64,000 nucleotides of DNA from Ranitomeya imitator. Its lineage: Eukaryota. Made by a program: the position numbers and the translations under genes. Location of the stretch: positions 415,648,001-415,712,000 of the forward strand of contig NC_091283.1 of NCBI RefSeq assembly GCF_032444005.1, written 5' to 3'. Shown one piece after another: positions 18,641-63,909 of the stretch. Every line of letters begins with the position of its first letter. The first letter of the stretch is position 1. A model generated the notes under the pieces. It saw nothing but the letters and a program-made list of their open reading frames with translations, was not told the DNA's origin and ran no database searches.

Positions 18641-19027
18641 AAATAACAAAAGATGCAGCACTCACCAGATTCTTGCTGAAGATAGTGTCCTTTATTCGCT
18701 TAAAGCGATGTGAGACATTATGCGGAGAGGCGGCAGGAAAGAGGATTGGGTGCGGAAAGAATCCTCTTTCCTGCCGCCTCTCCGCATAATGTCTCACATC
18801 GCTTTAAGCGAATAAAGGACACTATCTTCAGCAAGAATCTGGTGAGTGCTGCATCTTTTGTTATTTAACAAGTTGGAAAGTCTGTCTGCTTTATATGCTA
18901 AGCACCACCCGACATCTGCAAACACATAGACTGGTGGCTTGAAGTTTATGCCGAGACTTCTCCTACACTGTTACTGCCTGTGAAGATTAACACATCGAGT
19001 GCCGCTCAGTTCCTTTTCTGCGGGTCA
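18641..19027. mobile_element. Short Penelope-like insertion with a 107-bp fold-back and a 16-bp TSD
   Basis: GTAACATTGTACTGTA is repeated at 18625-18640 and 19028-19043. The perfect arms are 18641-18747 and 18760-18866. The AATAAA...GAGTGCTGC segment resembles the 3' part of the element at 4660-7250. Confidence 0.7.
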
Positions 19028-19374
19028 GTAACATTGTACTGTACCCTGCATGGAAAACAGCTGTGGACCCGCAGCGGCAAAATCGCCGCGGTTCCGCAGT
19101 AAAAACCGCATAGTGTGAACATGGCCTAAATAAAGAGAAAAAATGAAATAGTATTTAACAATAAACACATTTATTTATGTAAATAAAAAACAAAATAATA
19201 AAAGTACACATTTGGTATCCATCCATAAAGACCTGCTCTATAAAACTGTCCCACTAGTTAACCCCTTCAATAAACACCCTAAAAAAAAGAGAGGCAAAAA
19301 ACAATGCTTTATCATCATACTTCCGAACATAAAGTGCAATAAAATGCGATCAAAAAGATGGATGTAATAACGTC

Positions 19375-20220
19375 CCGAGGTCCCAGTTCTTTTGTTTTCT
19401 TCAGCTGAGATCAGCTATCAAGTCATACCTACGTTCTGGGAGTATGACTCAAATCATTTCATCTTTCCCCTTAATAGGAATTCTTAAGTCGCAAGGTCCC
19501 CAGGGACTCATCTCTGCTTTATACACATACATGTTATCGGTGGGAACCAATTCTGCTATAGTGTCAATTAAGGGAAGGTGGGAAGGTCTAATTCTTGACG
19601 CTCAAGATGAGGATTGGGAGGAAATTCTTGAATCTCCGATTGGAGTGTCCCCATCAGTCAATAATAGAATGACCCAGTTATATATCATAGATCAGTCATA
19701 TTTAACTCCGTTGCGGCTTTTTAAGATGGGTCGGTTTCAAACATCGGAATGTTTGAGATGTCATTCGCTGAAAGCAAACCTTATACACATGGTATGGCGT
19801 TGCCCCATTATTCTGTCTTAGTGGAGCCAAGTAACGTCGCTGTTGACATCTCTAGTACAATCCCCTGTTCCTCTCAGTCCCTTAGTTTGCTTATTTGGGG
19901 TGCTAGACTACGAAATCTGGGGGCACTATGTTAACATTTTTCTACCTGAGACACTCTTTCTGGCTAGGAAGGTGTTGGCATTGCTCTGGATGGGTAGTGC
20001 ACATCCCTCTCTCGGGACGTGGATAGAATTGGTAAACTCAATCATACCATATGAGCGAACATTATATCAAAACAGGGGCTGCTTAAAGAAATTCAACAAG
20101 ATTTGGGACAGGTGGAACTCTTCTCATCTTACTGTATCGGGTGATGGTGGCCTGACACCACCATGAGTGTTTTGGTTAGAACGCATCAACTCATACTCTA
20201 CTTCATCAGATAGTTATTAT
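19375..20220 (+). mobile_element. L1-clade LINE 3' fragment (ORF2 C-terminus with Cys-rich motif), one in-frame stop
   Basis: ORFs 19444-19821 and 19843-20166 are in the same frame, separated by TAG. Motifs include CLRC....ANLIHMVWRCP and LARKVLALLW...KIWDRW. Confidence 0.82.
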
Positions 20221-20226
20221 AAGGTA

Positions 20227-21742
20227 CCGTATATACTCGAGTATAAGCCGACCCCCTAATTTTGCCACAAAAAACTGGGAAAACTTAATGATTCGAGTAA
20301 AAGCCTAGGGTGGAAAATGCAGCAGCTACTGGTAAATATTAAAAATAAAAATAGATAAAAGTAAAATTAATTGAGACATCAGTAGGTTAAGTGTTTTTGA
20401 ATATCCATATTGAATCAGGAGCCCCATATAATGCTCCATACAGTTTATGATGGGCTCCATAGGATGCTCCTTATTAAAATATGCTCCATATAATCCTGCA
20501 CAAATGTTGATTGACCCCATAAGATGCTGCATACAGACATTTGCCCCGTATAATGCTCCACAAATGTGGATTATGGCCCCATGAGATGCCCCATACAGAT
20601 ATTTGCCCCCATATCATGCTGCACATGGCCACATAAGATGCCCCATACAGATATTTGCTCCCATATCATGCTGCACATGGCCACATAAGATGCCCCATAC
20701 AGATATTTGCCCCCATATAATGCTGCACATGGTCACATAAGATGCTCCATACAGATATATAAGATGCCCCATACGGATATTTGCCCCCATATCATGCTGC
20801 ACATGGCCACATAAGATGCCCCATACAGATATTTGCCCCCATATCATGCTGCACATGGCCACATAAGATGCCCCATACAGATATTTGCCCCCATATAATG
20901 CTGCACATGGCCACATAAGATGCTCCATACAGATATATAAGATGCCCCATACAGATATTTGCCCCCATATCATGCTGCACATGGCCACATAAGATGCCCC
21001 ATACAGATATTTGCCCCCATATCATGCTGCACATGGCCACATAAGATGCACCATACAGATATTTGCCCCCATATTATGCTGCACATGGCCACATAAGATG
21101 CTCCATACATATATTTGCCCCATATGCTGTTGCTGCGAATAAGAAAATTACATACTCACCTCTCAGGCCCCCGGCACGTGCTATACTCACCTTTCCCGTT
21201 CCACTGCTGACCGCCACTGTGTCTTCCCCATCCTCTGCACCGACGTTCAGGAAGAGGGCGGCACGCACTAATCACGTCACCGCGCCCTTTGACCGGAGCG
21301 TCACTGCGGAAGACACAGCGGCGCCGAGGATGGAACGAGGAGCAGGTGAGTATCGCACACTGCCCCTGTCATACTTACCTGCTCCTGGCGCCGTCGCTGC
21401 ACCTCTGTTCCCCGGCGCCGCATTTTCTTCCTGTAGTGAGCGGTCACCGTTACTGCTCATTACAGTAATGAATATGCGGCTCCACCTCTATGGGAGGTGG
21501 AGCCGCATATTCATTACTGTAATGAGCAGTACCATGTGACCGCTCACTACAGGAAGAAGCTGCAGCGCTGGAAGAAGCAGGGACGTGCAGGGACCGCACC
21601 AGTAGTAGGTGAGTATAATTAGACAGTCCCCGCTCCCCCTCCCCTGCCGACCCCTGGGTATGACTCAAGTATAAGCCGAGAGGGGGACTTTCAGCCCATA
21701 AAAGTGGGCTGAAAATCTCGGCTTATACTCGAGTATATACGG
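20227..21742. mobile_element. Tc2/pogo-like non-autonomous element carrying a 52-bp minisatellite
   Basis: TA|CCGTATATACTCGAGTATAAGCCG ... CGGCTTATACTCGAGTATATACGG|TA. Confidence 0.85.
20520..21125 (+). repeat. 52-bp tandem repeat, ~10-11 copies
   Basis: Unit ATGCCCCATACAGATATTTGCCCCCATATCATGCTGCACATGGCCACATAAG. Confidence 0.92.
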
Positions 21743-27716: not shown

Positions 27717-27877
27717 GCACGGTTGGGGTGCAACCATCAGAGCTTCAAGATTACGGGGCCATCGGGGGATCCACGCATGCTGCCTCATCAACGTCGATGT
27801 GGTCCTGTCAACACTGCACCTTCATGAACCAGGCTGGGACAGACCAGTGCGAGATGTGCCGCCTGCCCCGGACCTAG
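27717..27877 (+). CDS. NPLOC4: NPLOC4 last coding exon with NZF/RanBP2-type zinc finger and stop codon
   Basis: After ctttag|, the exon reads GC ACG GTT... = (S)TVGVQPSELQDYGAIGGSTHAASSTSMWSCQHCTFMNQAGTDQCEMCRLPRT*. The phase matches the previous exon. Confidence 0.97.
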
Positions 27878-34106: not shown

Positions 34107-34112
34107 TATAAA
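34107..34112 (+). promoter_or_regulatory. TATA box of the unnamed secreted-protein gene
   Basis: GGGCTATAAACTGCGCGG lies ~80 nt upstream of a strong donor CAG|GTATGA at 34189/34190. Confidence 0.55.
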
Positions 34113-34134
34113 CTGCGCGGACTGGAGGAAGTCT

Positions 34135-34189
34135 GGAGGGACCAGGACCAGGGAAGGTGGAAGGACACGTGTGGGGAACAACGCAGCAG
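34135..34189 (+). other. Putative non-coding first exon of the unnamed gene (start approximate)
   Basis: Purine-rich segment ~25-30 nt after the TATA box, ending at CAG|GTATGA. It contains no ATG. Confidence 0.45.
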
Positions 34190-35795
34190 GTATGAGCACT
34201 AGATGGAGTTATGCTCCCAGTATGGACTGGCTTTACTCTCCGCAGCGTACTGGGAATCAGCTAAGGAATCCTTCATAACAGAAAAAAAAAGTTACATAAG
34301 AGTCCAGCTGTTTTTCCGATAAAGCATAGTGATGTAGCAGAGCTGAACACTTCATTAATAACCGTTATCACACTCTTAGCTCTGCTACATCTGTAACGTG
34401 GGAATTCTGCGCTGGTTCCCAGTATAGCATGATGTGACTGGAGAATAGAATTTTCTCCTGGTGTTAAGTATTATGTCCTAGTAGTCAGATCCTGTTGGGA
34501 GTCGTGGTGTTTTAGGTATAGATTGTATTTTGGTCATCTTTGGGGTTGTAGTGTTCGATGCATAGAATATTATAGAAATACATTAAGATCATGGTGAGTT
34601 CTCGGGTCCTGTTGGGAGTTGGAGTGTTTGTACGGATTATAATAGAGCTGTATTATGGTCATGTCCAGTGATCAGTACACATTACGGGTTGTAGCAGTCA
34701 ATCTATGCAGTATAATAGAACTACATTATGGTCATGTTGAGTGCTAGTTTTCGATGTACCGAATGTAATAGACTTGTATTATGGTCATGTTGGGGGTTGT
34801 AGTGTTCCCTGAGGAGGCTATAGCAGAATTGTATTAAGGGCATATTGGGGGTGGTAGTATACAATCTATGACCTATAATAGAATTGTATTAAGGTCATAT
34901 TGGGGGTTGTAGTATTCTATAAATTTGCATATTATAATAGTATTTCGCTCTTTTCTAGTGGTTGATCACGTTGGGGGTTGTAGTGTTCCCTGTATAGTTG
35001 GTAAGGATATTGAAGTCATGTCCAGTAGTTGGGCTGCCATTTTTGGAGGCGTTTCTTATGAACCTATACCTCCTGTCATGTGCGGTGGTGGTAACGAGAA
35101 GAACCAGCACAAGCAATGGGCTTCATCTTGTTTTCCATGCTCTGTCCTCCTCTCCTCTATTTACCCCCCGGGTCTTACGTCTTATAGTGTTACATAAGAA
35201 ACATACTAGTCTCATGACTTCATCTTATGTCCTAATTCTTGCCTCCTTAGGTTCTTGGGGAGGTATGTGTCCATCTGTTTATGAGAAATCATTCTGTACA
35301 TAGCGTGACTAGGAAAATGCAGGAAGGAGATTGAGAATGTTCTGAATGCTTTCATCATCCCGAGAACAGATGGGTTTTATCAGTTACGTTTCCCTCTCCA
35401 TCATACTCTCTCCATGCTCTTCAGGATCCACACAGGTGGATCTAGTCCATTCCTACTCAAGACTTTCAATAAAAGGGATAGACAAAAGCTGAAGGACAAC
35501 TATAAGTCCCAGGAAAACTTGACCTGGTTGACCTAGAAGTTGCACAGCTTTCTGAAACTTCACATAGTCATATCCTCCAAGACTCCCACCAGTCGTCTTT
35601 ACCAAGAAGATCTTCAAAAGCCAAGACCACGAATCTGGACACCATACTTTAGTACTTGTTCCAGAAGCGTTATTGGTCTAAGTGGTGAACCCACCATGAC
35701 CAAGTGATGCTCCTTCATCTACACCAAATGGTTTTAGGTCAGTCTACCAAATTATAATAACCTCTATTATTGTCCCTACAGTCTCAGGACCAACC

Positions 35796-35892
35796 ATGGA
35801 GAAGATCTTGCTATGTCTGTTGTTGATCTTCACAATAGGCTTGGCCTCTAAGCAAAAGCGAGAGCCATTAGAGTGGGACTACCGATCAGAAG
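35796..35892 (+). CDS. Unnamed secreted protein, coding exon 1 (MEKILLCLLLIFTIGLASKQKREPLEWDYRSE+A)
   Basis: Acceptor ccctacag| at 35781, Kozak CAACCATGG, hydrophobic signal peptide, and donor G|GTGAGA (phase 1). Confidence 0.88.
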
Positions 35893-37004
35893 GTGAGATG
35901 TGGGACTCCCACAGTGATTAGTGATGATGGGACTGTGGTGGGGGTCAGTCAGCAATGTAGGATGGAACACTCGGTGCTTGTTTTTAATTCATGGAAAATT
36001 GTTTCGGAGAAAGTTATCCCCTATACATAGAATGGGGGACCCCCAGCAATCCTGAGATTGAGGCTCTGCAGTCCAGACTTGAATGAAGCTGAGGTGCCAC
36101 CGCTCGGCCTCCGCTCCATTCATTGTCAATGGGACTGCCAGAAATGGTCGTGTACAGCGCTAGGCTTTCTCCAGCAGACACGTAGACAATGAAAAGTGCT
36201 GATGTCTCAGTTGCTGTTGGATCCCCAGAAATGAATAAATTAATGGAACATCATGACTGATCAGTCGGAGTGCCACGAGTTGGATTAATACAGATATTAT
36301 TAATGGCCTTTTCTGACTAAAAGTACCCATATGAATCCAATATCTGTTGGTTGAATGCTTGTTTAGTTGACAGATGTCCCTCCTGACACTGTGATATACA
36401 CATGAATGATCTGCTGGTCCAAGTGTGAATGTGTTCTTAACAGGGAGAAAGCCACTGCCAGACACTTGGTCGCTTGTGGCAAAAGGGTAGGGCATAAAAA
36501 TTTAACATGCCCAATACTTTCCTCTTTACTGATCTCTTCTGTCAAAGAAGAGTCATGAGGCCCTCATGCACATATGACTGATTGGCCGAAAATGGCAGGT
36601 TGGGCCAACCTCGTTCTTTAGGATAGGTCATTACCCATTCAGCAATTCCCTTATTTACCAGTGACGAGCAGAGACTACAGTCGGCCAGGCGTTTGCCGAG
36701 TACAGTAATTAGGGATCCTCATTTTGGAGGCTGGTAGAGTTCCAGTGATTGGACCACCATAGTGTACCCTAACTATACGGCATGGTGGAAATCCCCCCCT
36801 ACAGACACCACCTTTATAAATGCCCCATTAAGGCATGTTGACCTTTTATACCAGGCGCTCCGCCATGAAGATTTTTGCCAACTGGTGACAGCTACGACCT
36901 CCGTGTACACGTCGTCTACAATGTGATGCAGTCTCGTGTGATGTGGGTTGCTGTTTTTAGTTCTGGGCATAGAACAGAAGTTTCTCACTTCTTTGATTCC
37001 ACAG

Positions 37005-37134
37005 CGGAGAAAGTGAACATGCGAGGGTGCGCTAATCTAACCAATGTGTTGGACAACTGGAAATTTGCCATCCTGACACAGTTCAGAAACCTTCTTTTGT
37101 ATGATCATCACACTGTACTGCCGGACTATGGGAG
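37005..37134 (+). CDS. Unnamed secreted protein, coding exon 2 (EKVNMRGCANLTNVLDNWKFAILTQFRNLLLYDHHTVLPDYG+R)
   Basis: Bounded by ttccacag| and AG|GTGAGA. The 130 nt are phase 1/2, compatible with both neighbouring exons. Confidence 0.88.
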
Positions 37135-37569
37135 GTGAGAATCTCCGAGCCTACAGTTCTTCACGTCTACATCATCCGCTTAGTGTGGAGCTTTGTTTTT
37201 TATTGTGCAGTCCTTTGTCTCTGGCTGGGAGGAAGCTAGCTGTATCAGAAACCACCTTCCATTCCACTAGCTACAATGGAGACTAGAAAGATTATGGTCG
37301 TAGAGATGAGCAAATCTTTTGAAATTCAAATTTGCCAGATTCATCAAGTTTTCCCCCAAAAATATGATTTACCGTAAATTAACTCACTGAAATTTGCGGT
37401 TAGAAGACCTGTAACAGCGAGGTCTCCTATGACTGTAATCAATACTTTTCAAGCTCTTTACTGCAAACTTAAGGATTGCTGAGTGACCTCAACATTTATG
37501 GTTATGAATAAACTTTTGCACTGCAGTCCTGTTTTGCACATTATTTCTAATGTTTATGCAGTGTTTTAA

Positions 37570-38647
37570 CCCCTTAGCGACCGAGCCAATTTTGACCTTA
37601 ATGACCAAGCTCTGGTTATAGAGGTTATAGCTCTGAAATGCTTCAACGGATCCCACTGATTCTGAGATTTTTTTTCGTGACATAGTTTACTTCATGATAG
37701 TGGTACAATTTCTTTGATGTGACTTGCGTTTATTTATGAAAAAAAACCCCTGAAATTTGACAAATTTAGAAAATTTAGCAAGTTTCAAACTTTTAATTTT
37801 TATGCCCTTAAATCTGAGAGTTATATCACACAAAATAGTTAATAAATAACATTTCCCACATGTCGGCACAATTTTGTAAACCAAATTTTTTTTCTTGTTA
37901 GGACATTATAAGGGTTAAAAGTTAACCAGCAATTTCTAATTCTTCCAACATTTACAAAACCATTTTTTTAGGGACCACCTCACATTTGAAGTCCCTTTGA
38001 AGGGTCTATATGACAGAAGATACCCAAAAGTGACACCACTGTAAAAACTGCACCCTTCAAGGTGTGTAAAACCACATTTAAGAAGTTTATTAACCCTTCA
38101 TGTGCTTCACGAGAACTAAAGCAGTGTAGAAGGAAAAAAAGTAACATTCAACTTTTTTCACAAAAAATTTACGTTAGACCCAAACTTTTTTATTTTCACA
38201 AGGGTATCAGGAGAAAATGGACCACAAAATTTGTTGTGCAATTTCTCCTGAGTATGCAGATACCCCGTATGTGGGGGGAAAGCCACTGTTTGGGCACATG
38301 GCAGGGCTCAGAAGGGAGGGAGCACCGTTTGACTTTTTGAATTCAAAATTGGCTGGAATCAATGGCGGGTGTCATGTTTCATTTGGAGACCCCCTGATGT
38401 ACCTAAACAGTGGAAACCCCCCAATTCTAACTCCAACCCTAACACAGCCCTAACACCAACCACAGCCCTAACCCCAAAGAATGGAAAAAAATACATTTTT
38501 TTTATTTTATTATTTTTGCTTAACTAAAGGGGTGACAATGGGGGGGGGGGGTCTGATTTAGGGTTAGAAAAGCATTAAAAAGTGGCGCTGAGGAATAAGA
38601 CCCCTTAACTGCCACCGCTAATAGACGTATCGGTGGTCGTTAAGGGG
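37570..38647 (+). mobile_element. piggyBac-like non-autonomous element (internally deleted relative of the element starting at 60081)
   Basis: TTAA|CCCCTTAGCGACC ... GTCGTTAAGGGG|TTAA. Short CCCTAA-like run at ~38430-38475. Confidence 0.82.
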
Positions 38648-39069
38648 TTAAAGCTTTCTTATCTCGATTGCTAAGTGTTAGAAAAAATGACACTTCCTTA
38701 CTTTTTCAAGTAAGAGCACGGTGAGGATAGAAAGGAAAGCAATATTGAATTGTGGGGATAAAACAACTCTTGTTTAATGTTCGTTCAAAAAATGATTACA
38801 AAAATGAAGAAAAGTAAGTTCATAGCACACAAAATTTAGTATTCTAGAAGAGAAACCAAGCATTCATTGGTCTTACATATGGTCTTGAAGCATGATGTGG
38901 TCTGTGTTGGAGATTCCCAAAGTATGAGAGATCTGACTGAACAGGAGTTGGGTCTGCTTATATACTATTTTCACCCATAGACTTACGGTACATTGGTTTC
39001 TATTTTTCCTATCTCATAACCACATATGGCGATCTGCCGCTATGTTCATAGTCTGTACCATAGTTACTG

Positions 39070-39995
39070 ATGCCGGCCTGCTGTGAGCGCCACCCTGTGG
39101 TCGGCGCTCATAGCAGGCCTGCAATTAAGCTACATAGCAGCGATCTGATGATCGCTGCTATGTAGCAGAGCCGATCGAGTGGTGCCAGCTTCTAGCCTCC
39201 CATAAAGGCTATTGAAGCATGGCAAAAGTAAAAAAAAAATGTTTTTAAAAATATGAAAAAAAAAAAAAAATAAAATAAAAGTTTAAATCGCCCCCCTTTC
39301 GCCCCATCCAAAATAAAATATTAAAAAAAAAATCAAACCTACACATATTTGGTATCACCGCGTTCTGAATCGCCTGATCTATCAATGCAAAAAAAGCATT
39401 AACCTGATCGCTAAACAGCGTAGCGAGAAAAACATTAGAAACGCCAGAATTACGCTTTTTTTGCATTAAAATGCAATAACGGGTGATCAAAAGAACATGT
39501 CTGCACAAAAGTGGCATCATTAAAAATGTCAACTCGGCACGCAAAAAATAAGCCCTCACCCGACCCCAGATCACGAAAAATGGAGACGCTACGGGTATCG
39601 GAAAATAGCGCTTTTTTTTTTTTTCTTTAAAGCAAAGTTTTGAATTTTTTTTACCACTTAGATAAAATATAACCTGGACATGTTTGGTGTCTATGAACTC
39701 GTAATGACCTGGAGAATCATAATATCAGGTCAGTTTTAACATTTAATGAATCTAGCAAAAAAGCCAAGCAAAAAACAAGTGTGGGATTGCACTTTTTTTG
39801 CAATTTCACCACACTTGGAATTTTTTTCCCGTTTTCTAGTACAAGACATGGTAAAACCAATGGTGTCATTCAAAAGTACAACTCGTCCCGCAAAAAATAA
39901 GCCCTCACATGGCCAAATTGACTGAAAAATAAAAAAAGTTATGGCTCTGGGAAGGAGGGGAGCGGAAAACGAAAAAGGGCCATGGCATGAAGGGG
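39070..39995 (+). mobile_element. Partial copy of the 8031-9293 piggyBac-like family
   Basis: Shares GCTGTGAGCGCCACCCTGTGGTCGGCGCTC and downstream sequence. Ends CATGAAGGGG|TTAA. Confidence 0.75.
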
Positions 39996-40209
39996 TTAAA
40001 GAGCCATTTATTATCTCCAAATAGCCACATATTGACAGTTCTGACAAGAGCCCTATAGTTATGACAAACGGAGAACAGATGTATCTAGCAAGATTCTCAA
40101 AATGGCTCAATCGCACACTAACCAGAATCTCTGCTTGCTTGTTAGACTCTGCATGTATTATGTAATCTTCTATATCTTTTATTATTGTTATATTAATATT
40201 TTACACTAA

Positions 40210-40670
40210 GCAGTGATGTCCTCTCACTATCCAGACTCGCTATATAGCTGCTGCATTCCCTGCCTCTGATTTTATACAGGCTATGATAGTCCCTCTTGAT
40301 TGGCTGGGCTATACAGTGTCCTTTCACACACACATCTGTACTGTTTTATTCAGTTTTTCAAAACTCCCTCATCACTATTGCTAAGCTGTGATGTCCTATC
40401 ACTGTCCAGACTCACTATATCGCGGCTGATGCATTCCCTGCCTCTGCTTTAATACAGGCTATGCTTGATTGGTTGGGCTATACAATGTCCTTTCACACAC
40501 ACTATCTGTACTGTCTATTCAGTGTTTTAAAGCTTCCTTATCTCTATTGCTTGTGACATCCTTCCACTATCCAGGCTCGCTATATAACAGCTGCTGCATT
40601 CCCTGCCTATGATTTTATACAGGCTATGATAGGCCTCCTTGTTTGGTTGTGCTATACTATGTGATGTGAT
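40210..40670 (+). repeat. Three diverged ~170-bp tandem copies
   Basis: The block CACTATCCAGACTCGCTATAT...GCATTCCCTGCCT...ATACAGGCTATG recurs at ~40223, ~40400 and ~40566. Confidence 0.75.
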
Positions 40671-41231
40671 GGCTGCTAGGCATTATGGAGAAGCCTGTAC
40701 GGATATACCTAACCTCATCTGAGTCTTCTCTGCCTCATGCAATCTTCTGCTTTGTGTAAAATAGTGTTGGCCATTTTTTGGGGATATTCCAGGAATTGAA
40801 TAACAAATTGTTTGAATTCTTTAGGTTCAGCAAATTTACCCAATATTTGACACCAATCGACTTGCTCATCTCTGTAAGATCTGATCCTTCAGTTAGGCCT
40901 CCACCAAATAAGATAGGCCCCCCAGTTTGACTTCTACCATATTGATTGTTTCAAGCGCTTTCTAAATTGAACATGCCACTAGTAAAGCACCAAAGAGAAC
41001 ACAGTAACCTTTTTGGCTGGGTTTCTCCTTTTAAATGGCTTAAAAATAAATCAAATGTACCAGACCCAGAACCCTGTCCACAGTAGTGCCAGCCAGCCAA
41101 TGCCACTGAGAACCATTCAGAGCAGCCTCAGGGGTCCATGCACTCATAAGTTGGGCGCCTCTACTTTACTTTATGGATTTTGTGAAATTCGTAACCAATA
41201 ATTAATCATTTTGCCCTTCTCTTCCTTTTAG

Positions 41232-41475
41232 AATCAAGTCACTTTCCGAAGCTCTTGACGACTTGTATAAAGAGTTTAACGCTTTGAAGGAACGTCTCGG
41301 AGAGCTCACTACTAAATTTGATGGCGTGGAAGCCTTTGTGGACCAGATGAATGCTGGTCGGCACATGCCCCCTGCCAGGCCACCTTCAGCAGTTGAAGAC
41401 TCGTACTCTGTGCCAAGCCAAAGTGGTCAAACACGAAGAGTGAAAAAAGTTAAAGCACCTGTTAATCGGGTATAA
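41232..41475 (+). CDS. Unnamed secreted protein, last coding exon (IKSLSEALDDLYKEFNALKERLGELTTKFDGVEAFVDQMNAGRHMPPARPPSAVEDSYSVPSQSGQTRRVKKVKAPVNRV*)
   Basis: Polypyrimidine acceptor cttccttttag|A. Phase 2 joins AG+A = Arg. The frame is open to TAA at 41475 and shows a heptad pattern. Confidence 0.88.
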
Positions 41476-41632
41476 AACAAGTGATGGGGGATTGGAATTG
41501 GGAATGGCATGGTGCGATTGCTGTTGAGCTGTGTTTCTCCTTCTCTGCTCCTACCTGACAGTGGCGATGAATACAATGCTTAACAATCATAGTCTTCTGG
41601 ATGTCAGGCAGTGAGCCCCTAGCAGATTTTAA

Positions 41633-42020
41633 AGGGGATCTGTCACTTAAATATGTAACATTTTGTTCCTATCTTGTGTAAATGCCACTGTTCTCCTGAA
41701 TCCGGCATTGTTTCCCTTTTGTTTCTGCGCCTCCATTCCAGGGATATGGCTTCTTCTTCTCAGTAATTAAATCTATGTTTTTATACAAGTAGGTGTGGTC
41801 CTCAAGTAGACTCAATAGAGAAAATTACATCCTCTTAGCAAAAAAAAAAAAAAAGGCAAAAAAAAAACCCCCACAAGATCTTCATACCGGAAAGAAAGGA
41901 TCATATCTCAGGAACGGAGAGATGCAGAGACAAAAAAAAAAAACGTGCCAGATTTGGGAGAACAGCGGCATTTACACCAGGTATAAAAATTACATATTTA
42001 TAAAGAGTGATAGGTCCTCT
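41633..42020. mobile_element. Kolobok/T2-type MITE in the 3' region of the unnamed gene
   Basis: TTAA|AGGGGATCTGTCAC ... GTGATAGGTCCTCT|TTAA. Confidence 0.7.
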
Positions 42021-42460: not shown

Positions 42461-42699
42461 TATATTCTACACATGTGTCTGCTGCACTTGAATTTCAAAT
42501 CCGTTTTCATCTACATATTACTTGTCCATGAGTTTCTGCATTTTGACATTCTTCAATTAGTCCTGCTGGAAATATATGGCCCCTAGGGAGAAGGAAGACG
42601 AGTACAGTGTGTTTTTGTAATTTTAAAATAACTTTTAGCTGGGAATATTCATTTACTGAACGGGAACAATCTCTTTAATATAACACCGCCATGTATTGA

Positions 42700-44345
42700 A
42701 CAAAAAATAGAGCCATACTTTGTTCATGTACTGCTGCTACATAGTGAACAAAAAGTAGAGCCATACTGTGTTCATATAATACTTCCACATAGTGATAAAA
42801 TAATAGAGCCATACTTTGTTCATATACTACTGCCACAGTGATCAAGTAATAGAGCCATATTGTGTTCATATACTACTGCCACATAATGATCTAGTAATAG
42901 AGCCATACTGTGTTCATATAATTCTGCCACATAGTGATCAAATAATAGAGCCATACTGTGTTAATATACTACTGCCACATAGTGATCAAGTAATAGAGCC
43001 ATACTGTGTTCATATACTACTGCCACATAGTGATCAAGTAATAGAGCCATACTGTGTTCATATACTACTGCCACATAGTGATCAAATAAGAGCCATACTG
43101 TGTTCATATACTACTGCCACAGTGATCAAGTAATAGAGCCATACTGTGTTCATATACTACTGCCACTTAGTGATCAAATAAGAGCCATACTGTGTTCATA
43201 TACTACTACCACAGTGATCAAGTAATAGAGCCATACTGTGTTCATATACTACTGCCACATAGTGATCAAATAAGAGCCATACTGTGTTCATATACTACTG
43301 CCACAGTGATCAAGTAATAGAGCCATACTGTGTTCATATACTACTGCCACATAGTGATCAAATAAGAGCCATACTGTGTTCATATACTACTACCACAGTG
43401 ATCAAGTAATAGAGCCATACTGTGTTCATATACTACTGCCACATAGTGATCAAATAATAGAGCCATACTGTGTTCATATACTACTGACACATAGTGATCA
43501 AATAACAGCCATACTGTGTTCATATACTACTGCCACAGTGATCAAGTAATAGAGCCATACTGTGTTCATATACTACTGCCACATAGTGATCAAGTAATAG
43601 AGCCATACTGTGTTCATATACTACTGCCACATAGTGATCAAATAAGAGCCATACTGTGTTCATATACTACTGCCACAGTGATCAAGTAATAGAGCCATAC
43701 TGTGTTCATATACTACTACCACATAGTGATCAAATAAGAGCCATACTGTGGTCATATACTACTGCCACAGTGATCAAGTAATAGAGCCATACTGTGTTCA
43801 TATACTACTGCCACATAGTGATCAAATAATAGAGCCATACTGTGTTCATATACTACTGCCACAGTGATCAAGTAAGTCATACTGTGTTTATATACTACTG
43901 CCACAGTGATCAAATAATAGAGCCATACTGTGTTCATATACTACTGCCACACAGTGATCAAGTAATAGAGCTATACTGTGTTCATATAATACTGCCACAG
44001 TGATTAATAGAGCCATACTGTGTTTATATACTACTGCCACATAGTGATCAAATAATAGAGCCATACTGTGTTCATATACTACTGCCACACAGTGATCAAG
44101 TAATAGAGCCATACTGTGTTCATATACTACTGTCACAGTGATCAAGTAATAGAGCCATACTGTGTTCATATACTACTGCCACATAGTGATCAAATAATAG
44201 AGCCATACTGTGTTCATATAATACTGCCACAGTGATCAAGTAATAGAACCATACTGTGTTTATATACTACTGCCACATAGTGATCAAATAATAGAGCCAT
44301 ACTGTGTGCGTATAATATTGCCATGCATTGATCAAATAATAGAAC
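42700..44345 (+). repeat. ~45-48-bp minisatellite, ~35 copies
   Basis: Unit AGAGCCATACTGTGTTCATATACTACTGCCAC(AT)AGTGATCAA(G/A)TA(AT). Confidence 0.93.
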
Positions 44346-44899
44346 CTTACTGTATTAAAGGGGTTTTTCCCTTTCAGTAAATAAATATCACCAGTCCACT
44401 GGGGAGTCTCGTCACTGCTTCCGCTGTCTGGCATTGGCTGTGGCGGTGACGTCGCGTTGACAGCCAATCACTGAGCTGATCAGCTCTGAAGGGAGCACTG
44501 TCTACATGCTACTGAGCTCACTTCCTAGCTGTCGTCAACACCACAGGTAATGCCAGCAACCGGAAGTAATGGCGGAGACTCAGTGCTGGACCTAGGGAAA
44601 GTGAGTACAGTGCTGTTTTTTTTTTAAAGTATAATAACCTACAGTCCGAGACATTCATTTACTGACAGAGAACAACCCTTCCAACATAAGTCACATAATG
44701 ATGGATTTAGAGAACAATGCTATGTTCATATAATACCACCATATACTGATCAAATCATAGAACCATATTGTGCTCACATAATGTCCCGACATGAAAGACA
44801 GGTCAAGTGAATGGTTTATATCTCATGCCAATGGCACCCGAGCAACTGTGACCAGGACCAAATTGTGATGACTGGGTGAGGCTATCTCCAAAACAGCAG

Positions 44900-46620
44900 G
44901 TCTCGTGGGGTGTTCCCGGTATACGGCGGGTCTCGTGTGGTGCTGTCGGTATATGGCAGGTCTCGGGTATTCCCGGTATACGGCAGGTCTCGTGGGGTGT
45001 TATCGGTATACGACGGGTCTTGTGGGGTGTTCCCGGTATACGGCAGGTCTCGTGGGGTGTTATCGGTATACGACGGGTCTCGTGGGGTGTTCCCGGTATA
45101 CGGCAGGTCTCGTGGGGTGTTATCGGTATACGGTGGGTCTCGTGGGGAGTTCCCGGTATATGGCGGGTCTCGAGGGGTGTTGTCAGTATACGGCAGGACT
45201 CGTGGAGAGTTCCCGGTATACGGCAGGTGTCGTGGGGTGTTATCGGTATACGGCAGGTCTCGTGGGGAGTTCCCGGTATATGGCGGGTCTCATAGGGTGT
45301 TATCGGTATACTGCGGGTCTCATGGGGTGTTATCGGTATATGGCGGGGCTCATGGGGTGTTATCGGTATACGGTGGGTCTCGTGGGGAGTTCCCGGTATA
45401 TGGCGGGTCTCGTGCGGTGCTATCGGTATACGGCGGCTCTCGTGGGGAGTTCCCGGTATATGGCGGGTCTCGTGCGGTGCTATCGGTATACGGCGGGTCT
45501 CGTGGGGAGTTCCCGGTATATGGCAGGTCTCGAGGGGTGTTGTCAGTATACGGCAGGTCTCATGGAGAGTTCCCGGTATATGGCGGGTCTCATAGGGTGT
45601 TATCGGTATACTGCGGGTCTCATGGGGAGTTCCCGGTATATGGCAGGTCTCGAGGGGTGACCGTGTTGTCAGTATACGGCAGGTCTCGTGGAGAGTTCCC
45701 GGTATACGGCGGGTCTCGTGGGGAGTTCCCGGTATATGGCAGGTCTCGAGGGGTGACCGTGTTGTCAGTATACGGCAGGTCTCGTGGAGAGTTCCCGGTA
45801 TACGGCAGGTGTCGTGGAGAGTTCCCGGTATACGGCAGGTGTCGTGGAGAGTTCCCGGTATACGGCAGGTGTCGTGGAGAGTTCCCGGTATACGGCGGGT
45901 CTCGTGGGGTGTTATCGGTATACGGCGGGTCTCGTGGGGTGTTATCGGTATACGGCAGGTCTCGTTGGGAGTTCCCGGTATATGGCGGGTCTCATAGGGT
46001 GTTATCGGTATACTGCGGGTCTCATGGGGTGTTATCGGTATATGGCGGGTCTCATGGGGTGTTATCGGTATACGGCAGGTCTCGTGGGGTGTTATCGGTA
46101 TACGGCAGGTCTCGTGGGGTGTTATCGGTATACGGCAGGTCTCGTTGGGAGTTCCCGGTATATGGCGGGTCTCATAGGGTGTTATCGGTATACTGCGGGT
46201 CTCATGGGGTGTTATCGGTATACGGCAGGTCTCGTGGGGTGTTATCGGTATACGGCAGGTCTCGTGGGGTGTTATCGGTATACGGCAGGTCTCGTGGGGT
46301 GTTATCGGTATACGGCAGGTCTCGTTGGGAGTTCCCGGTATATGGCGGGTCTCATAGGGTGTTATCGGTATACTGCGGGTCTCATGGGGTGTTATCGGTA
46401 TACTGCGGGTCTCATGGGGTGTTATCGGTATATGGCGGGTCTCATAGGGTGTTATCGGTATACTGCGGGTCTCATGGGGTGTTATCGGTATATGGCGGGT
46501 CTCGTGCGGTGTTATCGGTATACGGCAGGTCTCGTTGGGAGTTCCCGGTATATGGCAGGTCTCATGGGGTGTTATCGGTATACTGCGGGTCTCATGGGGT
46601 GTTGCCGCTACACGGCAGCT
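44900..46620 (+). repeat. 30-bp minisatellite, ~57 copies
   Basis: Unit CTCGTGGGGTGTT(A/C)(T/C)CGGTATACGGCAGGT. Its length is a multiple of 3, which explains the long repetitive ORFs. Confidence 0.95.
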
Positions 46621-46645: not shown

Positions 46646-47528
46646 AGGGAAACTGTCACCCCGTTTTTTGAGATTGAGCTATAAATACTGTTAAATAGGG
46701 CCTGCGCTGTGCGTTACTATAGTGTATGTAGTGTACCCTGATTCCCCATGTATGCTGAGAAATACATTACCAAAGTCGCCGTTTTCGCCTGTCAATCAGG
46801 CTGGTCTGGTCAGGTGGGCGTGTTCACAGCGCTCTTTTCTTCCCCAGCTTTCCGTTGGTGGCGTAGTGGTGTGCGCATGTCCAGAGTTCCGACTTCCCTG
46901 CGCCCACGTGAAGACACAGCGCGCGATCTGCGCTGTAATCCCTTGCATCGGTGGGGGCGGCCATCTTCCTGGGGCCGCGCGTGCGCAGATGGAGTGCTCT
47001 GCTGCACGGGGCTTCAGGAAAATGGCCGCGGGATGCCGCGCGTGCGCATTAGAGATCGCGGCGGCCATTTTCCCAAAGCCGAGTTTGCATCTCGGCTTTG
47101 GGAAAATGGCCGCCGCGATCTCTAATGCGCACGCGCGGCATCCCGCGGCCATTTTCCTGAAGCCCCGTGCAGCAGAGCACTCCATCTGCGCACGCGCGGC
47201 CCCAGGAAGATGGCCGCCCCCACCGATGCAAGGGATTACAGCGCAGATCGCGCGCTGTGTCTTCACGTGGGCGCAGGGAAGTCGGAACTCTGGACATGCG
47301 CACACCACTACGCCACCAACGGAAAGCTGGGGAAGAAAAGAGCGCTGTGAACACGCCCACCTGACCAGACCAGCCTGATTGACAGGCGAAAAAGGCGACT
47401 TTGGTAATGTATTTCTCAGCATACATGGGGAATCAGGGTACACTACATACACCATAGTAACGCACAGCGCAGGCCCTATTTAACAGTATTTATAGCTCAA
47501 TCTCAAAAAACGGGGTGACAGGTTCCCT
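46646..47528. mobile_element. Second copy of the palindromic Kolobok/T2 MITE (883 bp)
   Basis: TTAA TSDs at 46642-46645 and 47529-47532. Same family as 2005-2890. Confidence 0.9.
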
Positions 47529-48354: not shown

Positions 48355-51300
48355 ATTACCCTCCCCCTTCGGTGTATAACATCCAGCCCCTCTTCCCCCG
48401 GACCCCCAGTGTATATCCTCCGCCTCCCCCCATGTATACTAAATGGACCCTCCCCCTTCGGTGTATAACATCCAGCCCCTCTTCCCCCAGTGTATATCCT
48501 CCGCCTCCCCCCCATGTATACTAAATGGACCCTCCCCCTTCGGTGTATAACATCCAGCCCTTCTTCCCCCAGTGTATATCCTCCGCCTCCCCCCATGTAT
48601 ACTAAATGGACCCTCCCCCTTCGGTGTATAACATCCAGCCCCTCTTCCCCCAGTGTATATCCTCCGCCTCCCCCCCATGTATACTAAATGGACCCTCCCC
48701 CTTCGGTGTATAACATCCAGCCCCTCTTCCCCCAATGTATATCCTCCGCCTCTCCCCCATGTATACTAAATGGACCCTCCCCCTTCGGTGTATAACATCC
48801 AGCCCCTCTTCCCCCAGTGTATATCCTCCGCCTCCCCCCCATATATACTAAATGGACCCTCCCCCTTCGGTGTATAACATCCAGCCCTTCTTCCCCCAGT
48901 GTATATCCTCCGCCTCCCCCCATGTATACTAAATGGACCCTCCCCCTTCGGTGTATAACATCCAGCCCCTCTTCCCCCAGTGTATATCCTCCGCCTCCCC
49001 CCCATGTATACTAAATGGACCCTCCCCCTTCGGTGTATAACATCCAGCCCCTCTTCCCCCAGTGTATATCCTCCGCCTCTCCCGCATGTATACTAAATGG
49101 ACCCTCCCCCTTCGGTGTATAACATCCAGCCCCTCTTCCCCCAGTGTATATCCTCCGCCTCTCCCCCAAGTATACTAAATGGACCCTCCCCCTTCGGTGT
49201 ATAACATCCAGCCCCTCTTCCCCCAATGTATATCCTCCGCCTCTCCCCCATGTATACTAAATGGACCCTCCCCCTTCGGTGTATAACATCCAGCCCCTCT
49301 TCCCCCAGTGTATATCCTCCGCCTCCCCCCCATGTATACTAAATGGACCCTCCCCCTTCGGTGTATAACATCCAGCCCCTCTTCCCCCAGTGTATATCCT
49401 CCGCCTCCCCACATGTATACTAAATGGACCCTCCCCCTTCGGTGTATAACATCCAGCCCCTCTTCCCCCAGTGTATATCCTCCGCCTCTCCCCCATGTAT
49501 ACTAAATGGACCCTCCCCCTTCGGTGTATAACATCCAGCCCCTCTTCCCCCAGTGTATATCCTCCGCCTCCCCACATGTATACTAAATGGACCCTCCCCC
49601 TTCGGTGTATAACATCCAGCCCCTCTTCCCCCAGTGTATATCCTCCGCCTCCCCCCCATGTATACTAAATGGACCCTCCCCCTTCGGTGTATAACATCCA
49701 GCCCCTCTTCCCCCAGTGTATATCCTCCGCCTCCCCCCCATGTACACTAAATGGACCCTCCCCCTTCGGTGTATAACATCCAGCCCCTCTTCCCCCAGTG
49801 TATATCCTCCGCCTCCCCCCCATGTACACTAAATGGACCCTCCCCCTTCGGTGTATAACATCCAGCCCCTCTTCCCCCAGTGTATATCCTCCGCCTCCCC
49901 CCCCATGTACACTAAATGGACCCTCCCCCTTCGGTGTATAACATCCAGCCCCTCTTCCCCCAGTGTATATCCTCCGCCTCCCCCCATGTACACTAAATGG
50001 ACCCTCCCCCTTCGGTGTATAACATCCAGCCCCTCTTCCCCCAGTGTATATCCTCCGCCTCCCCCCCATGTACACTAAATGGACCCTCCCCCTTCGGTGT
50101 ATAACATCCAGCCCCTCTTCCCCCAGTGTATATCCTCCGCCTCCCCCCCATGTATACTAAATGGACCCTCCCCCTTCGGTGTATAACATCCAGCCCCTCT
50201 TCCCCCAGTGTATATCCTCCGCCTCCCCCCATGTATACTAAATGGACCCTCCCCCTTCAGTGTATAACATCCAGCCCCTCTTCCCCCAGTGTATATCCTC
50301 CGCCTCCCCCCCATGTATACTAAATGGACCCTCCCCCTTCGGTGTATAACATCCAGCCCCTCTTCCCCCAGTGTATATCCTCCGCCTCTCCCCCATGTAT
50401 ACTAAATGGACCCTCCCCCTTCGGTGTATAACATCCAGCCCCTCTTCCCCCAGTGTATATCCTCCGCCTCTCCCCCATGTATACTAAATGGACCCTCCCC
50501 CTTCGGTGTATAACATCCAGCCCCTCTTCCCCCAGTGTATATCCTCCGCCTCCCCCCCATGTATACTAAATGGACCCTCCCCCTTCGGTGTATAACATCC
50601 AGCCCCTCTTCCCCCAGTGTATATCCTCCGCCTCCCCCCATGTATACTAAATGGACCCTCCCCCTTCGGTGTATAACATCCAGCCCCTCTTCCCCCAGTG
50701 TATATCCTCCGCCTCCCCATATGTATACTAAATGGACCCTCCCCCTTCGGTGTATAACATCCAGCCCCTCTTCCCCAAGTGTATATCCTCCGCCTCTCCC
50801 CCATGTATACTAAATGGACCCTCCCCCTTCGGTGTATAACATCCAGTCCCTCTTCCCCCAGTGTATATCCTCCGCCTCCCCCCCCATGTATACTAAATGG
50901 ACCCTCCCTCTTCGGTGTATAACATCCAGCCCCTCTTCCCCCAGTGTATATCCTCCTCCTCTCTCCCATGTATACTAAATGGACCCTCCCCCTTCGGTGT
51001 ATAACATCCAGCCCCTCTTCCCCCAGTGTATATCCTCCGCCTCTCCCCCATGTATACTAAATGGACCCTCCCCCTTCGGTGTATAACATCCAGCCCCTCT
51101 TCCCCCAGTGTATATCCTCCGCCTCTCCCCCAAGTATACTAAATGGACCCTCCCCCTTCGGTGTATAACATCCAGCCCCTCTTCCCCCAATGTATATCCT
51201 CCGCCTCTCCCCCATGTATACTAAATGGACCCTCCCCCTTCGGTGTATAACATCCAGCCCATCTTCCCCCAGTGTATATCCTTCGCCTCCCCCCCCCCCC

Positions 51301-54300
51301 CCCCCATGTATACTAAATGGACCCTCCCCCTTCGGTGTATAACATCCAGCCCCTCTTCCCCCAGTGTATATCCTCCGCCTCCCCACATGTATACTAAATG
51401 GACCCTCCCGCTTGGTGTATAACATCCAGCCCCTCTTCCCCCAGTGTATATCCTCCGCCTCTCCCCCATGTATACTAAATGGACCCTCCCCCTTTGGTGT
51501 ATAACATCCAGCCCCTCTTCCCCCAGTGTATATCCTCCGCCTCCCCCCCATGTATACTAAATGGACCCTCCCCCTTCGGTGTATAACATCCAGCCCCTCT
51601 TCCCCCAGTGTTTATCCTCCGCCTCTCCCCCATGTATACTAAATGGACCCTCCCCCTTCGGTGTATAACATCCAGCCCCTCTTCCCCCAGTGTATATCCT
51701 CCTCCTCTCCCCCATGTATACTAAATGGACCCTCCCCCTTCGGTGTATAACATCCAGCCCCTCTTCCCCCAGTGTATATCCTCCGCCTCCCCCCCCCATG
51801 TATACTAAATGGACCCTCCCCCTTCGGTGTATAACATCCAGCCCCTCTTCCCCCAGTGTATAGCCTCCGCCTCCCCCCCATGTATACTATTTGGACCCTC
51901 CCCCTTCGGTGTATAACATCCAGCCCCTCTTCCCCCAGTGTATATCCTCCGCCTCCCCCCCCCATGTATACTAAATGGACCCTCCCCCTTCGGTGTATAA
52001 CATCCAGCCCCTCTTCCCCCAGTGTATATCCTCCGCCTCCCCCCATGTATACTATTTGGACCCTCACCCTTCGGTGTATAACATCCAGCCCCTCTTCCCC
52101 CAGTGTATATCCTCCGCCTCCCCCCATGTATACTAAATGGACCCTCCCCCTTCGGTGTATAACATCCAGCCCCTCTTCCCCCAGTGTATATCCTCCGCCT
52201 CCCCATATGTATACTAAATGGACCCTCCCCCTTCGGTGTATAACATCCAGCCCCTCTTCCCCCAGTGTATATCCTCCGCCTCTCCCCCATGTATACTAAA
52301 TGGACCCTCCCCCTTCGGTGTATAACATCCAGTCCCTCTTCCCCCAGTGTATATCCTCCGCCTCCCCCCCCATGTATACTAAATGGACCCTCCCTCTTCG
52401 GTGTATAACATCCAGCCCCTCTTCCCCCAGTGTATATCCTCCTCCTCTCCCCCATGTATACTAAATGGACCCTCCCCCTTCGGTGTATAACATCCAGCCC
52501 CTCTTCCCCCAGTGTATATCCTCCGCCTCTCCCCCATGTATACTAAATGGACCCTCCCCCTTCGGTGTATAACATCCAGCCCCTCTTCCCCCAGTGTATA
52601 TCCTCCGCCTCTCCCCCAAGTATACTAAATGGACCCTCCCCCTTCGGTGTATAACATCCAGCCCCTCTTCCCCCAATGTATATCCTCCGCCTCTCCCCCA
52701 TGTATACTAAATGGACCCTCCCCCTTCGGTGTATAACATCCAGCCCATCTTCCCCCAGTGTATATCCTTCGCCTCCCCCCCCCCCCCATGTATACTAAAT
52801 GGACCCTCCCCCTTCGGTGTATAACATCCAGCCCCTCTTCCCCCAGTGTATATCCTCCGCCTCCCCCCCATGTATACTAAATGGACCCTCCCCCTTCGGT
52901 GTATAACATCCAGCCCCTCTTCCCCCAGTGTTTATCCTCCGCCTCTCCCCCATGTATACTAAATGGACCCTCCCCCTTCGGTGTATAACATCCAGCCCCT
53001 CTTCCCCCAGTGTATATCCTCCTCCTCTCCCCCATGTATACTAAATGGACCCTCCCCCTTCGGTGTATAACATCCAGCCCCTCTTCCCCCAGTGTATATC
53101 CTCCGCCTCCCCCCCCCATGTATACTAAATGGACCCTCCCCCTTCGGTGTATAACATCCAGCCCCTCTTCCCCCAGTGTATAGCCTCCGCCTCCCCCCCC
53201 ATGTATACTATTTGGACCCTCCCCCTTCGGTGTATAACATCCAGCCCCTCTTCCCCCAGTGTATATCCTCCGCCTCCCCCCCCATGTATACTAAATGGAC
53301 CCTCCCCCTTTGGTGTATAACATCCAGCCCCTCTTCCCCCAGTGTATATCCTCCGCCTCCCCCCATGTATACTATTTGGACCCTCACCCTTCGGTGTATA
53401 ACATCCAGCCCCTCTTCCCCCAGTGTATATCCTCCGCCTCCCCCCCATGCAGGGTGGATAAAAATCAATGTTTTTTTAAAAAAAAAATCAAAAAAATCGG
53501 ATTTTTTTTATTTAAATCGGATTTTTTTGATTTAAATCGGATTTTTTTGATTTAAATCAGATTTTTTTCAATAAACTGCTTTTTGAGGAAAATATTTTAC
53601 CATCCAAAGGTTCTTCCATCATGAGATAAAGCTGAGTTGTTTAACTCAGTAGAATAAAGGCTGTATATGTGTAACATTCCCAATGCCATGCTATTCCAGA
53701 GGTTTCTGTAGGATTAGTGGGCAGTTTCTCTCCTATATTATCACAGACGCTCGCTTTACTTACGCAGTTCTCAAAACTGAATTTGACTCCGCAGAGGTCC
53801 CAGTCTCTTCTTTAGGGCAAAAATGTTACAACATGAACAGAGTTGAGAAAAAGACCTTAATCCTATTGTTCTAGGATTAAGGAGGAGGAAGGGCAAGCAG
53901 ACAAGAAAATGAAAGTGAAACTTTGAGCACAATACTGCAGCATAGCCACAGACAGACAAGTCTGGATCTGTTTGTGTGTACGATCTGAGGTTTATTACAT
54001 TCTTTCCTTATAATGGCAGCAGGCCGTAAAAGAGACCCAGTTTGGGAATATTTTAATGAAGCTCCTTCGCCTATCGGTAAGGCAGGCATGCGTGCAAAAT
54101 GCAAACGATGCAACAAAGAGATGCAAAGCCTGGTGGCGCGAATGAGGCAACATCATGAGAAGTGCGGTGATGAAGAGGAGTCATCCTCCTCCTCACACTT
54201 AGATTCACATTCTTCTTGTGTTGTGCAGATCTATTCCACTCCAAAAAATCAGAAACATATTGTCTAACTTCTTGGACTTGGCACTGAAAGGGTTGATTCT

Positions 54301-55330
54301 GTATTCATAGGTTTGTAGAACAATAGGATTAAGGTCTTTTTCTCAACTCTGTTCATGTTGTAACATTTTTGCCGTGAAGAAGAGGCTGGGACCTCTGCGG
54401 AGTCAAATTCAGTTAGGTAGAAACTTTGATTTAAATCAAGCCTTACTGACTAGTGATTTAAATCGTGATTTAAATCAGTTAGATTTAAATCAAATCCACC
54501 CTGCCCCCATGTATACTAAATGGACCCTCCCCCTTCAGTGTATAACATCCAGCCCATCTTCCCCCAGTGTATATCCTTCGCCTCCCCCCCCCCCCCCATG
54601 TATACTAAATGGACCCTCCCTCTTCGGTGTATAACATCCAGCCCCTCTTCCCCCAGTGTATATCCTCCTCCTCTCCCCCATGTATACTAAATGGACCGTC
54701 CCCCTTCGGTGTATAACATCCAGCCCCTCTTCCCCCAGTGTATATCCTCCGCCTCCCCCCCATGTATACTAAATGGACCCTCCCCCTTCGGTGTATAACA
54801 TCCAGCCCCTCTTCCCCCAGTGTATATCCTCCGCCTCCCCCCATGTATACTATTTGGACCCTCCCCCTTCGGTGTATAACATCCAGCCCCTCTTCCCCCA
54901 GTGTATATCATCCGGGCCCCTCCACCTCAGCCCCTCTTTCCCCAGTGTATATCCTCCGGGCCCCCCCACCTCAGCCCCTCTTCCCCCAGTGGATATCCTC
55001 CGGGCCCACCCACCTCAGCCCCTCTTCCCCCAGTGTATATCCTCCGGGCCCCCCATCTCAGCCCCTCTTTCCCCAGTGTATATCCTCCTCCTCTCCCCCA
55101 TGTATACTATTTGGACCCTCCCTCCTTCGGTGTATAACGTCCAGACCCTCTTCTCTCTTGTATATACGTCAGGACTCTCACCCCTCCACCCCACCATGTA
55201 TGACCTCCAAGTACTTGGCTCTCAGTGGATAACTTCCGACCCCTCGTCCCCCCCCTGGTGTATAACATCCAGACACTCTCCCCCCCCCCCCCCTCCCCGG
55301 GTGTATAGCATCCAGCTTTTTGTGCCCCTC
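48355..55330 (+). repeat. ~82-bp C-rich satellite (~62 copies before the hAT insertion, resuming after it and decaying at ~54900-55330)
   Basis: Unit CATGTATACTAAATGGACCCTCCCCCTTCGGTGTATAACATCCAGCCCCTCTTCCCCCAGTGTATATCCTCCGCCTCCCCCC. Confidence 0.97.
53450..54503 (+). mobile_element. hAT transposon deletion derivative with a BED zinc-finger remnant, inserted in the satellite
   Basis: TIRs CAGGGTGGAT / ATCCACCCTG and the 8-bp TSD CCCCCATG (53442-53449, 54504-54511). Subterminal GATTTAAATC repeats. ORF 54013-54267 reads MAAGRKRDPVWEYF...AKCKRCNKEMQSLVARMRQHHEKC. Confidence 0.93.
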
Positions 55331-63781: not shown

Positions 63782-63909
63782 NNNNNNNNNNNNNNNNNNN
63801 NNNNNNNNNNNNNNNNNNNNNNNNNNNNNNNNNNNNNNNNNNNNNNNNNNNNNNNNNNNNNNNNNNNNNNNNNNNNNNNNNNNNNNNNNNNNNNNNNNNN
63901 NNNNNNNNN
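63782..63909. other. Assembly gap (128 N)
   Basis: Run of N. Confidence 1.

Follow-up and report, generated by a model that had tools for sequence, protein, structure and literature searches.

The stretch of DNA considered here, 64,000 nucleotides of the Ranitomeya imitator genome (contig NC_091283.1, positions 415,648,001 to 415,712,000 of the forward strand; "the window" means this whole stretch), carries on its plus strand a gene for an unnamed protein of 156 amino acids. The reading that we favor, with a probability of roughly 0.6, is that this protein is a secreted, N-glycosylated coiled-coil oligomer, linked between chains by a disulfide at Cys41, held on heparan sulfate by its C-terminal tail and binding some protein partner. 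Small secreted coiled-coil glycoproteins with a basic tail are a familiar kind of molecule, but the family to which this one belongs is uncharacterized: it is an orphan family of jawed vertebrates, composed of three old clades, and has neither a characterized member nor a structure nor a Pfam model. In the annotations of other species the gene appears as a prediction, but it is unnamed and unstudied everywhere.

The gene is real, spliced and transcribed, with four exons, three of them coding. In the sequence as read, the start codon lies at 35796, the first donor GT at 35893 is answered by an acceptor AG that ends at 37004, and the second donor GT at 37135 by an acceptor AG that ends at 41231, so that the first coding exon (35782-35892) is followed by a phase-1 intron and the second (37005-37134, residues 33-76) by a phase-2 intron. 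Splicing 35796-35892, 37005-37134 and 41232-41475 in silico yields 471 nucleotides, which translate into 156 codons and a single terminal stop. Contigs of 717-787 nucleotides from four public runs, belonging to four different studies, cover 35779-35890, 37003-37132 and 41230-41679 or further, and in all four runs they omit exactly 35893-37004 and 37135-41231, both bounded by GT..AG. That these runs are RNA is our guess, but contigs that skip introns show spliced transcripts nevertheless, and the gene model is therefore transcript-supported. The contigs also extend 25-68 letters 5′ of 35779, and these extra letters match 34163-34186 uniquely, so that a non-coding 5′ exon precedes the three coding ones. 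From the sequence we place this exon near 34120-34189, with an approximate start, an end at 34189 followed by a donor GT at 34190, and a TATA-like tataaa (34108-34113) just before it. The last exon codes for residues 76-156 and the stop (41232-41475, with the stop at 41473-41475), and its 3′ untranslated region is covered by contigs from 41476 at least to 41711, with a possible ATTAAA signal at 41766-41771.

The gene spans 5.7 kb here as against 1.3 kb for the gar orthologue because intron 2 (37135-41231, 4097 bp; joint 37132>41230 in all four runs) is full of high-copy repeats. These interspersed repeats occupy 37500-40120, where contigs from other loci add up to a depth in the tens of thousands and the read layout contains many false short "joints". 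For annotation, the model adds a real gene that tracks based on open reading frames (ORFs) had overlooked.

Both the position of the gene and its exon structure are conserved. NPLOC4 ends about 6 kb upstream of the 5′ exon: its last coding exon (27800-27877, plus strand) carries the C-terminal NZF zinc finger, WSCQHCTFMNQAGTDQCEMCRLPRT, together with the stop codon. In gar and gecko the orthologue likewise stands directly downstream of NPLOC4, on the same strand and 6-8 kb away, and the boundaries between its three coding exons match, falling near residues 32-35 and 75-77. Beyond it gar has an RNF213-like gene (14747-21328 of the gar locus L001); in the window only repeats follow the orphan gene, up to 64 kb. 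The orthologue of the carp Labeo rohita (P0199) has been deposited as "Nuclear localization 4 like", a name that looks like an annotation error, borrowed from the neighboring NPLOC4.

Relatives were sought exon by exon and through orthologues, the joined 156-residue protein being confined to local scripts. Exon 3, used in a word search, returned 36 proteins, all "uncharacterized", with E values down to 4e-19; a core profile run over 1.84 billion proteins picked up 197 representatives at E ≤ 1e-3, and a profile of the family found 518 proteins in a collection clustered at 90%. The names among the matches that we saw were "uncharacterized protein LOC...", "hypothetical protein", "unnamed protein product", clone-based zebrafish names and one apparent misnomer, and no paper was found under four zebrafish clone names and six LOC identifiers of the family. 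No Pfam family passed threshold for the three exon translations or for seven full-length relatives; DUF7310, DUF5798, Spc7 and others appeared below threshold as coiled-coil look-alikes and were set aside. Against sequence profiles of the PDB only the neck of DC-SIGNR and designed coils were matched, no stretch passing alone. The Foldseek comparison proposed in an earlier, automated reading of this locus (the first-pass annotation) was run against the PDB and gave nothing at E ≤ 0.001, and a wide VIA-align search gave just generic long helices and coiled-coil chains with Z up to 4.6; these fold searches started from two AlphaFold models of orthologues. Shape search of the ESM Atlas recovered, apart from noise, the family's own two clusters, "Si:dkey-282h22.5" and "Si:ch211-243a20.3", both restricted to Chordata. 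In the feature search of the same resource, exon 3 matched phage and bacterial entries scoring at most 0.81, and an orthologue matched nothing among the named clusters.

A tree of the core columns, computed with positions 41-43 left out and read through its unrooted splits, since midpoint rooting was uninformative, divides the family. One split, with support of 1.0, has all 86 Cys41-bearing sequences and nothing else on one side, which defines clade A; a second, also with support of 1.0, holds 76 of the 77 clade-C sequences. The clade A signature is C-[AS]-N-L-T, and the window gene, with C41-A-N-L-T, is a member of this clade. Named members of clade A come from sharks, chimaera, bichir, gar, bowfin, teleosts, coelacanth, frogs, axolotl, lizards and many birds. 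Clade B reads V-A-N-L-T, with Val41 and the sequon, and all its named members belong to ray-finned fishes or coelacanth; in clade C position 41 is Val or Ile, Ser43 replaces the sequon and Pro replaces His67, with named members among sharks, teleosts, lungfish, newt and birds. No mammal appeared among the named matches inspected, mammalian genomes not having been searched directly, and this absence leads us to infer that the family was lost in mammals. The zebrafish genes are still known by clone names, a sign that they have probably been given no human orthologue.

The clade A orthologues (si:ch73-127m5.3, si:dkey-282h22.5 and entries called "uncharacterized", among them those of Discoglossus pictus and Ambystoma mexicanum) share with the window gene the signal peptide, Cys41, N-L-T, the DH..LPDYGRI loop, the heptad helix, the basic tail, the three coding exons and the NPLOC4 neighborhood, and differ in the length and sequence of the Pro/Ser linker and in the basic motif after the signal peptide, which is degenerate in sharks and teleosts. 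Over the core (residues 27-115), identity to the window product is 94% in Discoglossus, 88% in axolotl, 87% in gecko, 84% in basking shark and 79% in gar. The bird copies of clade A, rich in Gly, Pro, Ala and Arg, are more diverged (69% core identity in vulture). Clade B (si:ch211-76l23.4; core identity 63-66%) and clade C (si:ch211-243a20.3; 30-43%) keep the two-helix core, the LPDY loop, the hydrophobic heptads and the basic C-terminal patch; clade B differs in having Val for Cys41, whereas clade C has no Cys, S-x-T for the sequon, Pro for His67 and no basic cluster after the signal peptide.

Cys41 (37028-37030) is present in all 86 clade-A proteins; in 81 of them the conserved domain contains no other Cys, and 76 have a tail free of Cys, while the domain of clades B and C almost never contains one. 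Of the sequon N43-L-T (37034-37042), 85 of the 86 clade-A proteins and all 27 of clade B keep Asn43; clade C retains only Thr45. The heptad positions between 80 and 112 are hydrophobic in all three clades, and the conservation of Cys41 and the heptads among orthologues, by which, among other things, the first-pass annotation had said its own proposal should stand or fall, is thus borne out. W51, I55, L71-P72-D/E73-Y74 and R76 are invariant or nearly so, and D66-H67, D86, K89, E90, N92, K95 and R97 are also kept within clades A and B. All three clades end in a basic tail (RRVVVRKVKK, RRVIRKK and KRRVYIRRRK are examples) that lies behind a linker of very variable length, and the median of the highest Lys plus Arg count per 10-residue tail window is 5-6 in every clade. 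To judge from these alignments, the 85-residue core is under very strong constraint.

Several features of the precursor had been pointed out in the first-pass annotation, and all of them were recovered from the joined translation. The hydrophobic stretch at residues 4-17 has a Kyte-Doolittle mean of 2.9 in a local script, with G15 at -3 and A17 at -1, which reproduces the reported G-x-A motif; under a rule that asks for an n-region, 7-15 hydrophobic core residues and small side chains at both -3 and -1, K3, a core of I4-L16 and the small residues G15 and A17 fit a predicted signal peptide of residues 1-17 (35796-35846), and the orthologues are laid out likewise. KQKR was found again at residues 19-22 (35850-35861, followed by EPLEWDYRSE). 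The claim of a single Cys stands for the mature protein, where C41 adjoins the sole sequon, but not for the precursor, which has a second Cys at position 7 within the signal peptide. The heptad helix L80-V112 (41242-41340) is real and longer than had been claimed: 12 consecutive L/I/V/F/M positions spaced by three or four residues can be read from I77 to M115, and a run of 12 was reached by none of 20,000 shuffles of the mature sequence, whose maximum was 9. Beyond it follow the Pro/Ser linker (residues 116-143, 41350-41433) and the reported basic patch RRVKKVK (residues 144-150, 41434-41454; RR at 144, KK at 147), so that the protein ends 41 residues past the helix. The tail as a whole (residues 116-156) has an isoelectric point of 11.5, with basic and hydrophobic residues alternating. 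Within it, V146-K-K-V-K-A151 fits XBBXBX, which together with XBBBXXBX is the Cardin-Weintraub pattern of heparin-binding clusters, and lies where AlphaFold predicts no secondary structure.

AlphaFold models of the bowfin orthologue (from an alignment of 16 sequences) and of the Discoglossus orthologue (85 sequences) agree with each other. In each, a signal-peptide helix and a short helix (29-35) precede helix 1 (about 38-65), and a loop spanning 66-79 leads to helix 2 (80-118), the block means of the predicted local distance difference test for helix 2 being 82-96 in the deeper model, whereas the tail is modeled at low confidence and without secondary structure. Helix 1, which with the invariant loop DH..LPDYGR is encoded within the second coding exon, had been overlooked in the first-pass annotation. 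In several structure matches, residues 36-124 run along a single long coiled-coil chain with a root-mean-square deviation near 9 Å, which argues that the modeled monomer is extended and kinked, with no tight hairpin, and that both of its hydrophobic seams are left unburied. Direct-coupling analysis could not separate a hairpin from an extended form, with about 36 effective sequences and top pairs that resemble artefacts of alignment gaps.

If these features act together, the protein would enter the secretory pathway by its signal peptide, would be cut after Ala17 and would probably be glycosylated at Asn43. Its two amphipathic helices, which span about 38-65 and 80-118 with the invariant DH..LPDYGRI loop between them, would then assemble between chains into a coiled-coil bundle and bury the hydrophobic seams of both. 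Clade A proteins would lock this assembly by an interchain disulfide through the lone Cys41, which sits at the N-terminus of helix 1, and a Cys that is single and unpaired favors an assembly of two or some other even number of chains. Behind the flexible Pro/Ser linker the basic C-terminal patch may be held out, with VKKVKA as the segment that would anchor the protein on heparan sulfate or a different polyanion, while the invariant surface residues of helix 2 (K89, E90, N92, K95 and R97) and the loop would contact a specific protein partner or receptor; it is this invariant polar surface of helix 2, together with the LPDY.R loop, that argues for such a partner. KQKR22 may, with less certainty, mark the end of a short propeptide.

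Some observations pull the other way. The predicted template modeling score of the monomer models is just 0.27-0.31. Clades B and C do without the Cys, and clade C does without the sequon too, so neither is required for the fold. Secretion, glycosylation, the disulfide, the oligomeric state and heparin binding are all predicted properties, and "ligand" is a guess from the conserved surface residues. Much of what the first-pass annotation proposed nevertheless fits: a secreted, disulfide-linked coiled-coil oligomer suits the lone conserved Cys41 and the heptads, while the prohormone part of that proposal is weak. The role that it suggested, "hormone-like ligand or matrix adaptor", would be an extrapolation from sequence. 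A bolder form of the proposal can be stated, namely that the three clades constitute a family of jawed-vertebrate extracellular signaling ligands that pre-dates the split of sharks from bony vertebrates and was lost in mammals, the product of the window gene being a dimeric, disulfide-linked, heparan-sulfate-retained ligand with a receptor of its own. We consider this possible but rather doubtful.

The alternative that survives best would have Cys41 bond to another secreted or membrane protein, with the coil pairing with a paralogue or other partner, so that the protein serves as a covalent subunit or adaptor of a hetero-complex. A Cys left unpaired in 81 of the 86 orthologues would serve such a complex, as would the invariant surface of helix 2 and a monomer that is modeled as extended with its seams exposed. 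However, the absence of the Cys from clades B and C means that a covalent bond is not family-wide, and the lizard matches look to be of clade A only, though not every match was inspected. On this evidence a hetero-complex seems to us unlikely.

If the protein were instead a prohormone or peptide precursor, convertases would cut after KQKR22 and at RR145 and KK148, and the active product would be a released peptide and not the helical domain. A K-x-[KR]-R motif does stand right after the signal peptide in frogs, axolotl, lizards, coelacanth, bichir, gar and bowfin, and short basic propeptides of this sort occur in proPTH, proalbumin and proapoA-II. A dibasic pair follows the signal peptide in 23 of 27 clade-B and 49 of 86 clade-A proteins, but in only 4 of 77 in clade C; the fuller [KR]x[KR]R is found in just 28 of 86 clade-A proteins and in none of the 27 of clade B or the 77 of clade C, sharks having RKS, RRSR or QKY and many teleosts lacking it. 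The KR site that had been expected to be conserved is thus only partly so: it is clear in the frogs, fishes and other lineages listed first, and degenerate or absent in sharks, many teleosts and clade C. In clade B, moreover, the basic run is mostly a dibasic pair followed by Pro (KRRP), and a Pro after the basic run would disfavor convertase cleavage. The site lies only 1-5 residues past the predicted signal cleavage, and a cut at 22 would free only five residues. The strongest conservation is found in the helical core and not in any short peptide between dibasic sites. The release of a C-terminal basic peptide, also suggested in the first-pass annotation, finds no support here, for what the tail conserves is the basic patch itself, no conserved site precedes it, and the linker before it varies freely in length. 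We therefore hold a peptide precursor to be quite unlikely.

Retention inside the cell can be argued from the fact that signal cleavage was read from the -3/-1 rule alone: the hydrophobic N-terminus could be a signal anchor, or the protein could be held in the endoplasmic reticulum, the Golgi or another compartment. Yet the hydrophobic core is just 13-14 residues or so with small residues at -3 and -1, no KDEL-type end was seen, the conserved sequon implies exposure to the lumen of the endoplasmic reticulum, and the signal-peptide exon is followed by a phase-1 intron, an arrangement common among secreted proteins. A protein that is not secreted is, in our estimate, improbable. As for a host-defense precursor of the cathelicidin type, in which a conserved pro-domain bears a short cationic C-terminal antimicrobial peptide, the strongly basic, alternating tail would suit it, but a core that is 84% identical in frog and shark does not behave like that of a fast-evolving immune effector, no more than about 8-10 residues of cationic motif are conserved and no conserved cleavage site precedes them, which makes this a very improbable explanation.

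Several repeats lie elsewhere in the window. A retrotransposon with long ORFs occupies 13999-17974 on the plus strand, some 10 kb before the last coding exon of NPLOC4 and presumably within an NPLOC4 intron. Reverse transcriptase (RVT_1, E = 2e-22) and RNase H domains are encoded by its ORF at 14868-16967, and an overlapping ORF of 843 amino acids (15443-17974, plus strand), which has no Pfam match, resembles by eye the tyrosine-recombinase part of DIRS-like elements. Satellite-like arrays follow the orphan gene directly, at 42697-44353 (a 48/92-bp unit in about 35 or 18 copies) and at 44899-46603 (a 30-bp unit in 56 copies). A 5-kb tandem array of an 82-bp C-rich unit (48403-53449; 61 copies with 96% matches), with shorter related arrays after it at 54592-55088, makes the GC skew very strongly negative between 48 and 55 kb. 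A palindromic repeat is present twice (2126-2738 and 46722-47455), its copies carrying ORFs on both strands with nearly identical translation (MECSAARGFRKMAAGCRACA...) and no Pfam match, and a run of N occupies 63782-63909.

A secreted protein that has hardly changed in some 450 million years usually has an important partner to which it is specific. That this family has neither a Pfam model, nor a solved structure, nor a functional name is likely due to the apparent lack of the gene in mammals, which leaves it without a name derived from human. Xenopus and zebrafish both carry the gene and are easily manipulated, and work in them could reveal a new component of extracellular signaling or matrix in non-mammalian vertebrates.

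Several well-known secreted proteins offer partial parallels to this architecture. Tetranectin (CLEC3B) and the necks of collectins are secreted, combining a short coiled-coil oligomerization helix with a Lys-rich heparin-binding segment, and tetranectin has a three-exon layout with its signal peptide in exon 1. The orphan protein resembles them in its coiled-coil helix and basic segment, although its basic patch is C-terminal and theirs is N-terminal. The neck of DC-SIGNR, its only natural match among the PDB profiles, was matched with no stretch passing alone, and no sequence homology was shown. A reading of the family as tetranectin-like or as C-type lectins was rejected, as no lectin domain follows the coil (there is no Pfam match in the exons or in the seven relatives). 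In proPTH, proalbumin and proapoA-II the signal peptide is followed by a piece of 5-6 residues that ends in a dibasic pair, and ApoA-II is a small helical protein that dimerizes through one Cys near its N-terminus; the layout of the putative propeptide in the orphan protein is alike, while the sequences are unrelated and the orphan motif, a candidate cleavage site, is only partly conserved. In PDGF, VEGF and interferon-gamma, disordered basic C-terminal tails retain secreted oligomeric ligands on heparan sulfate. The core fold of the orphan protein differs from all of these, and its heparin binding is a prediction, but in its basic C-terminal tail it is like them.

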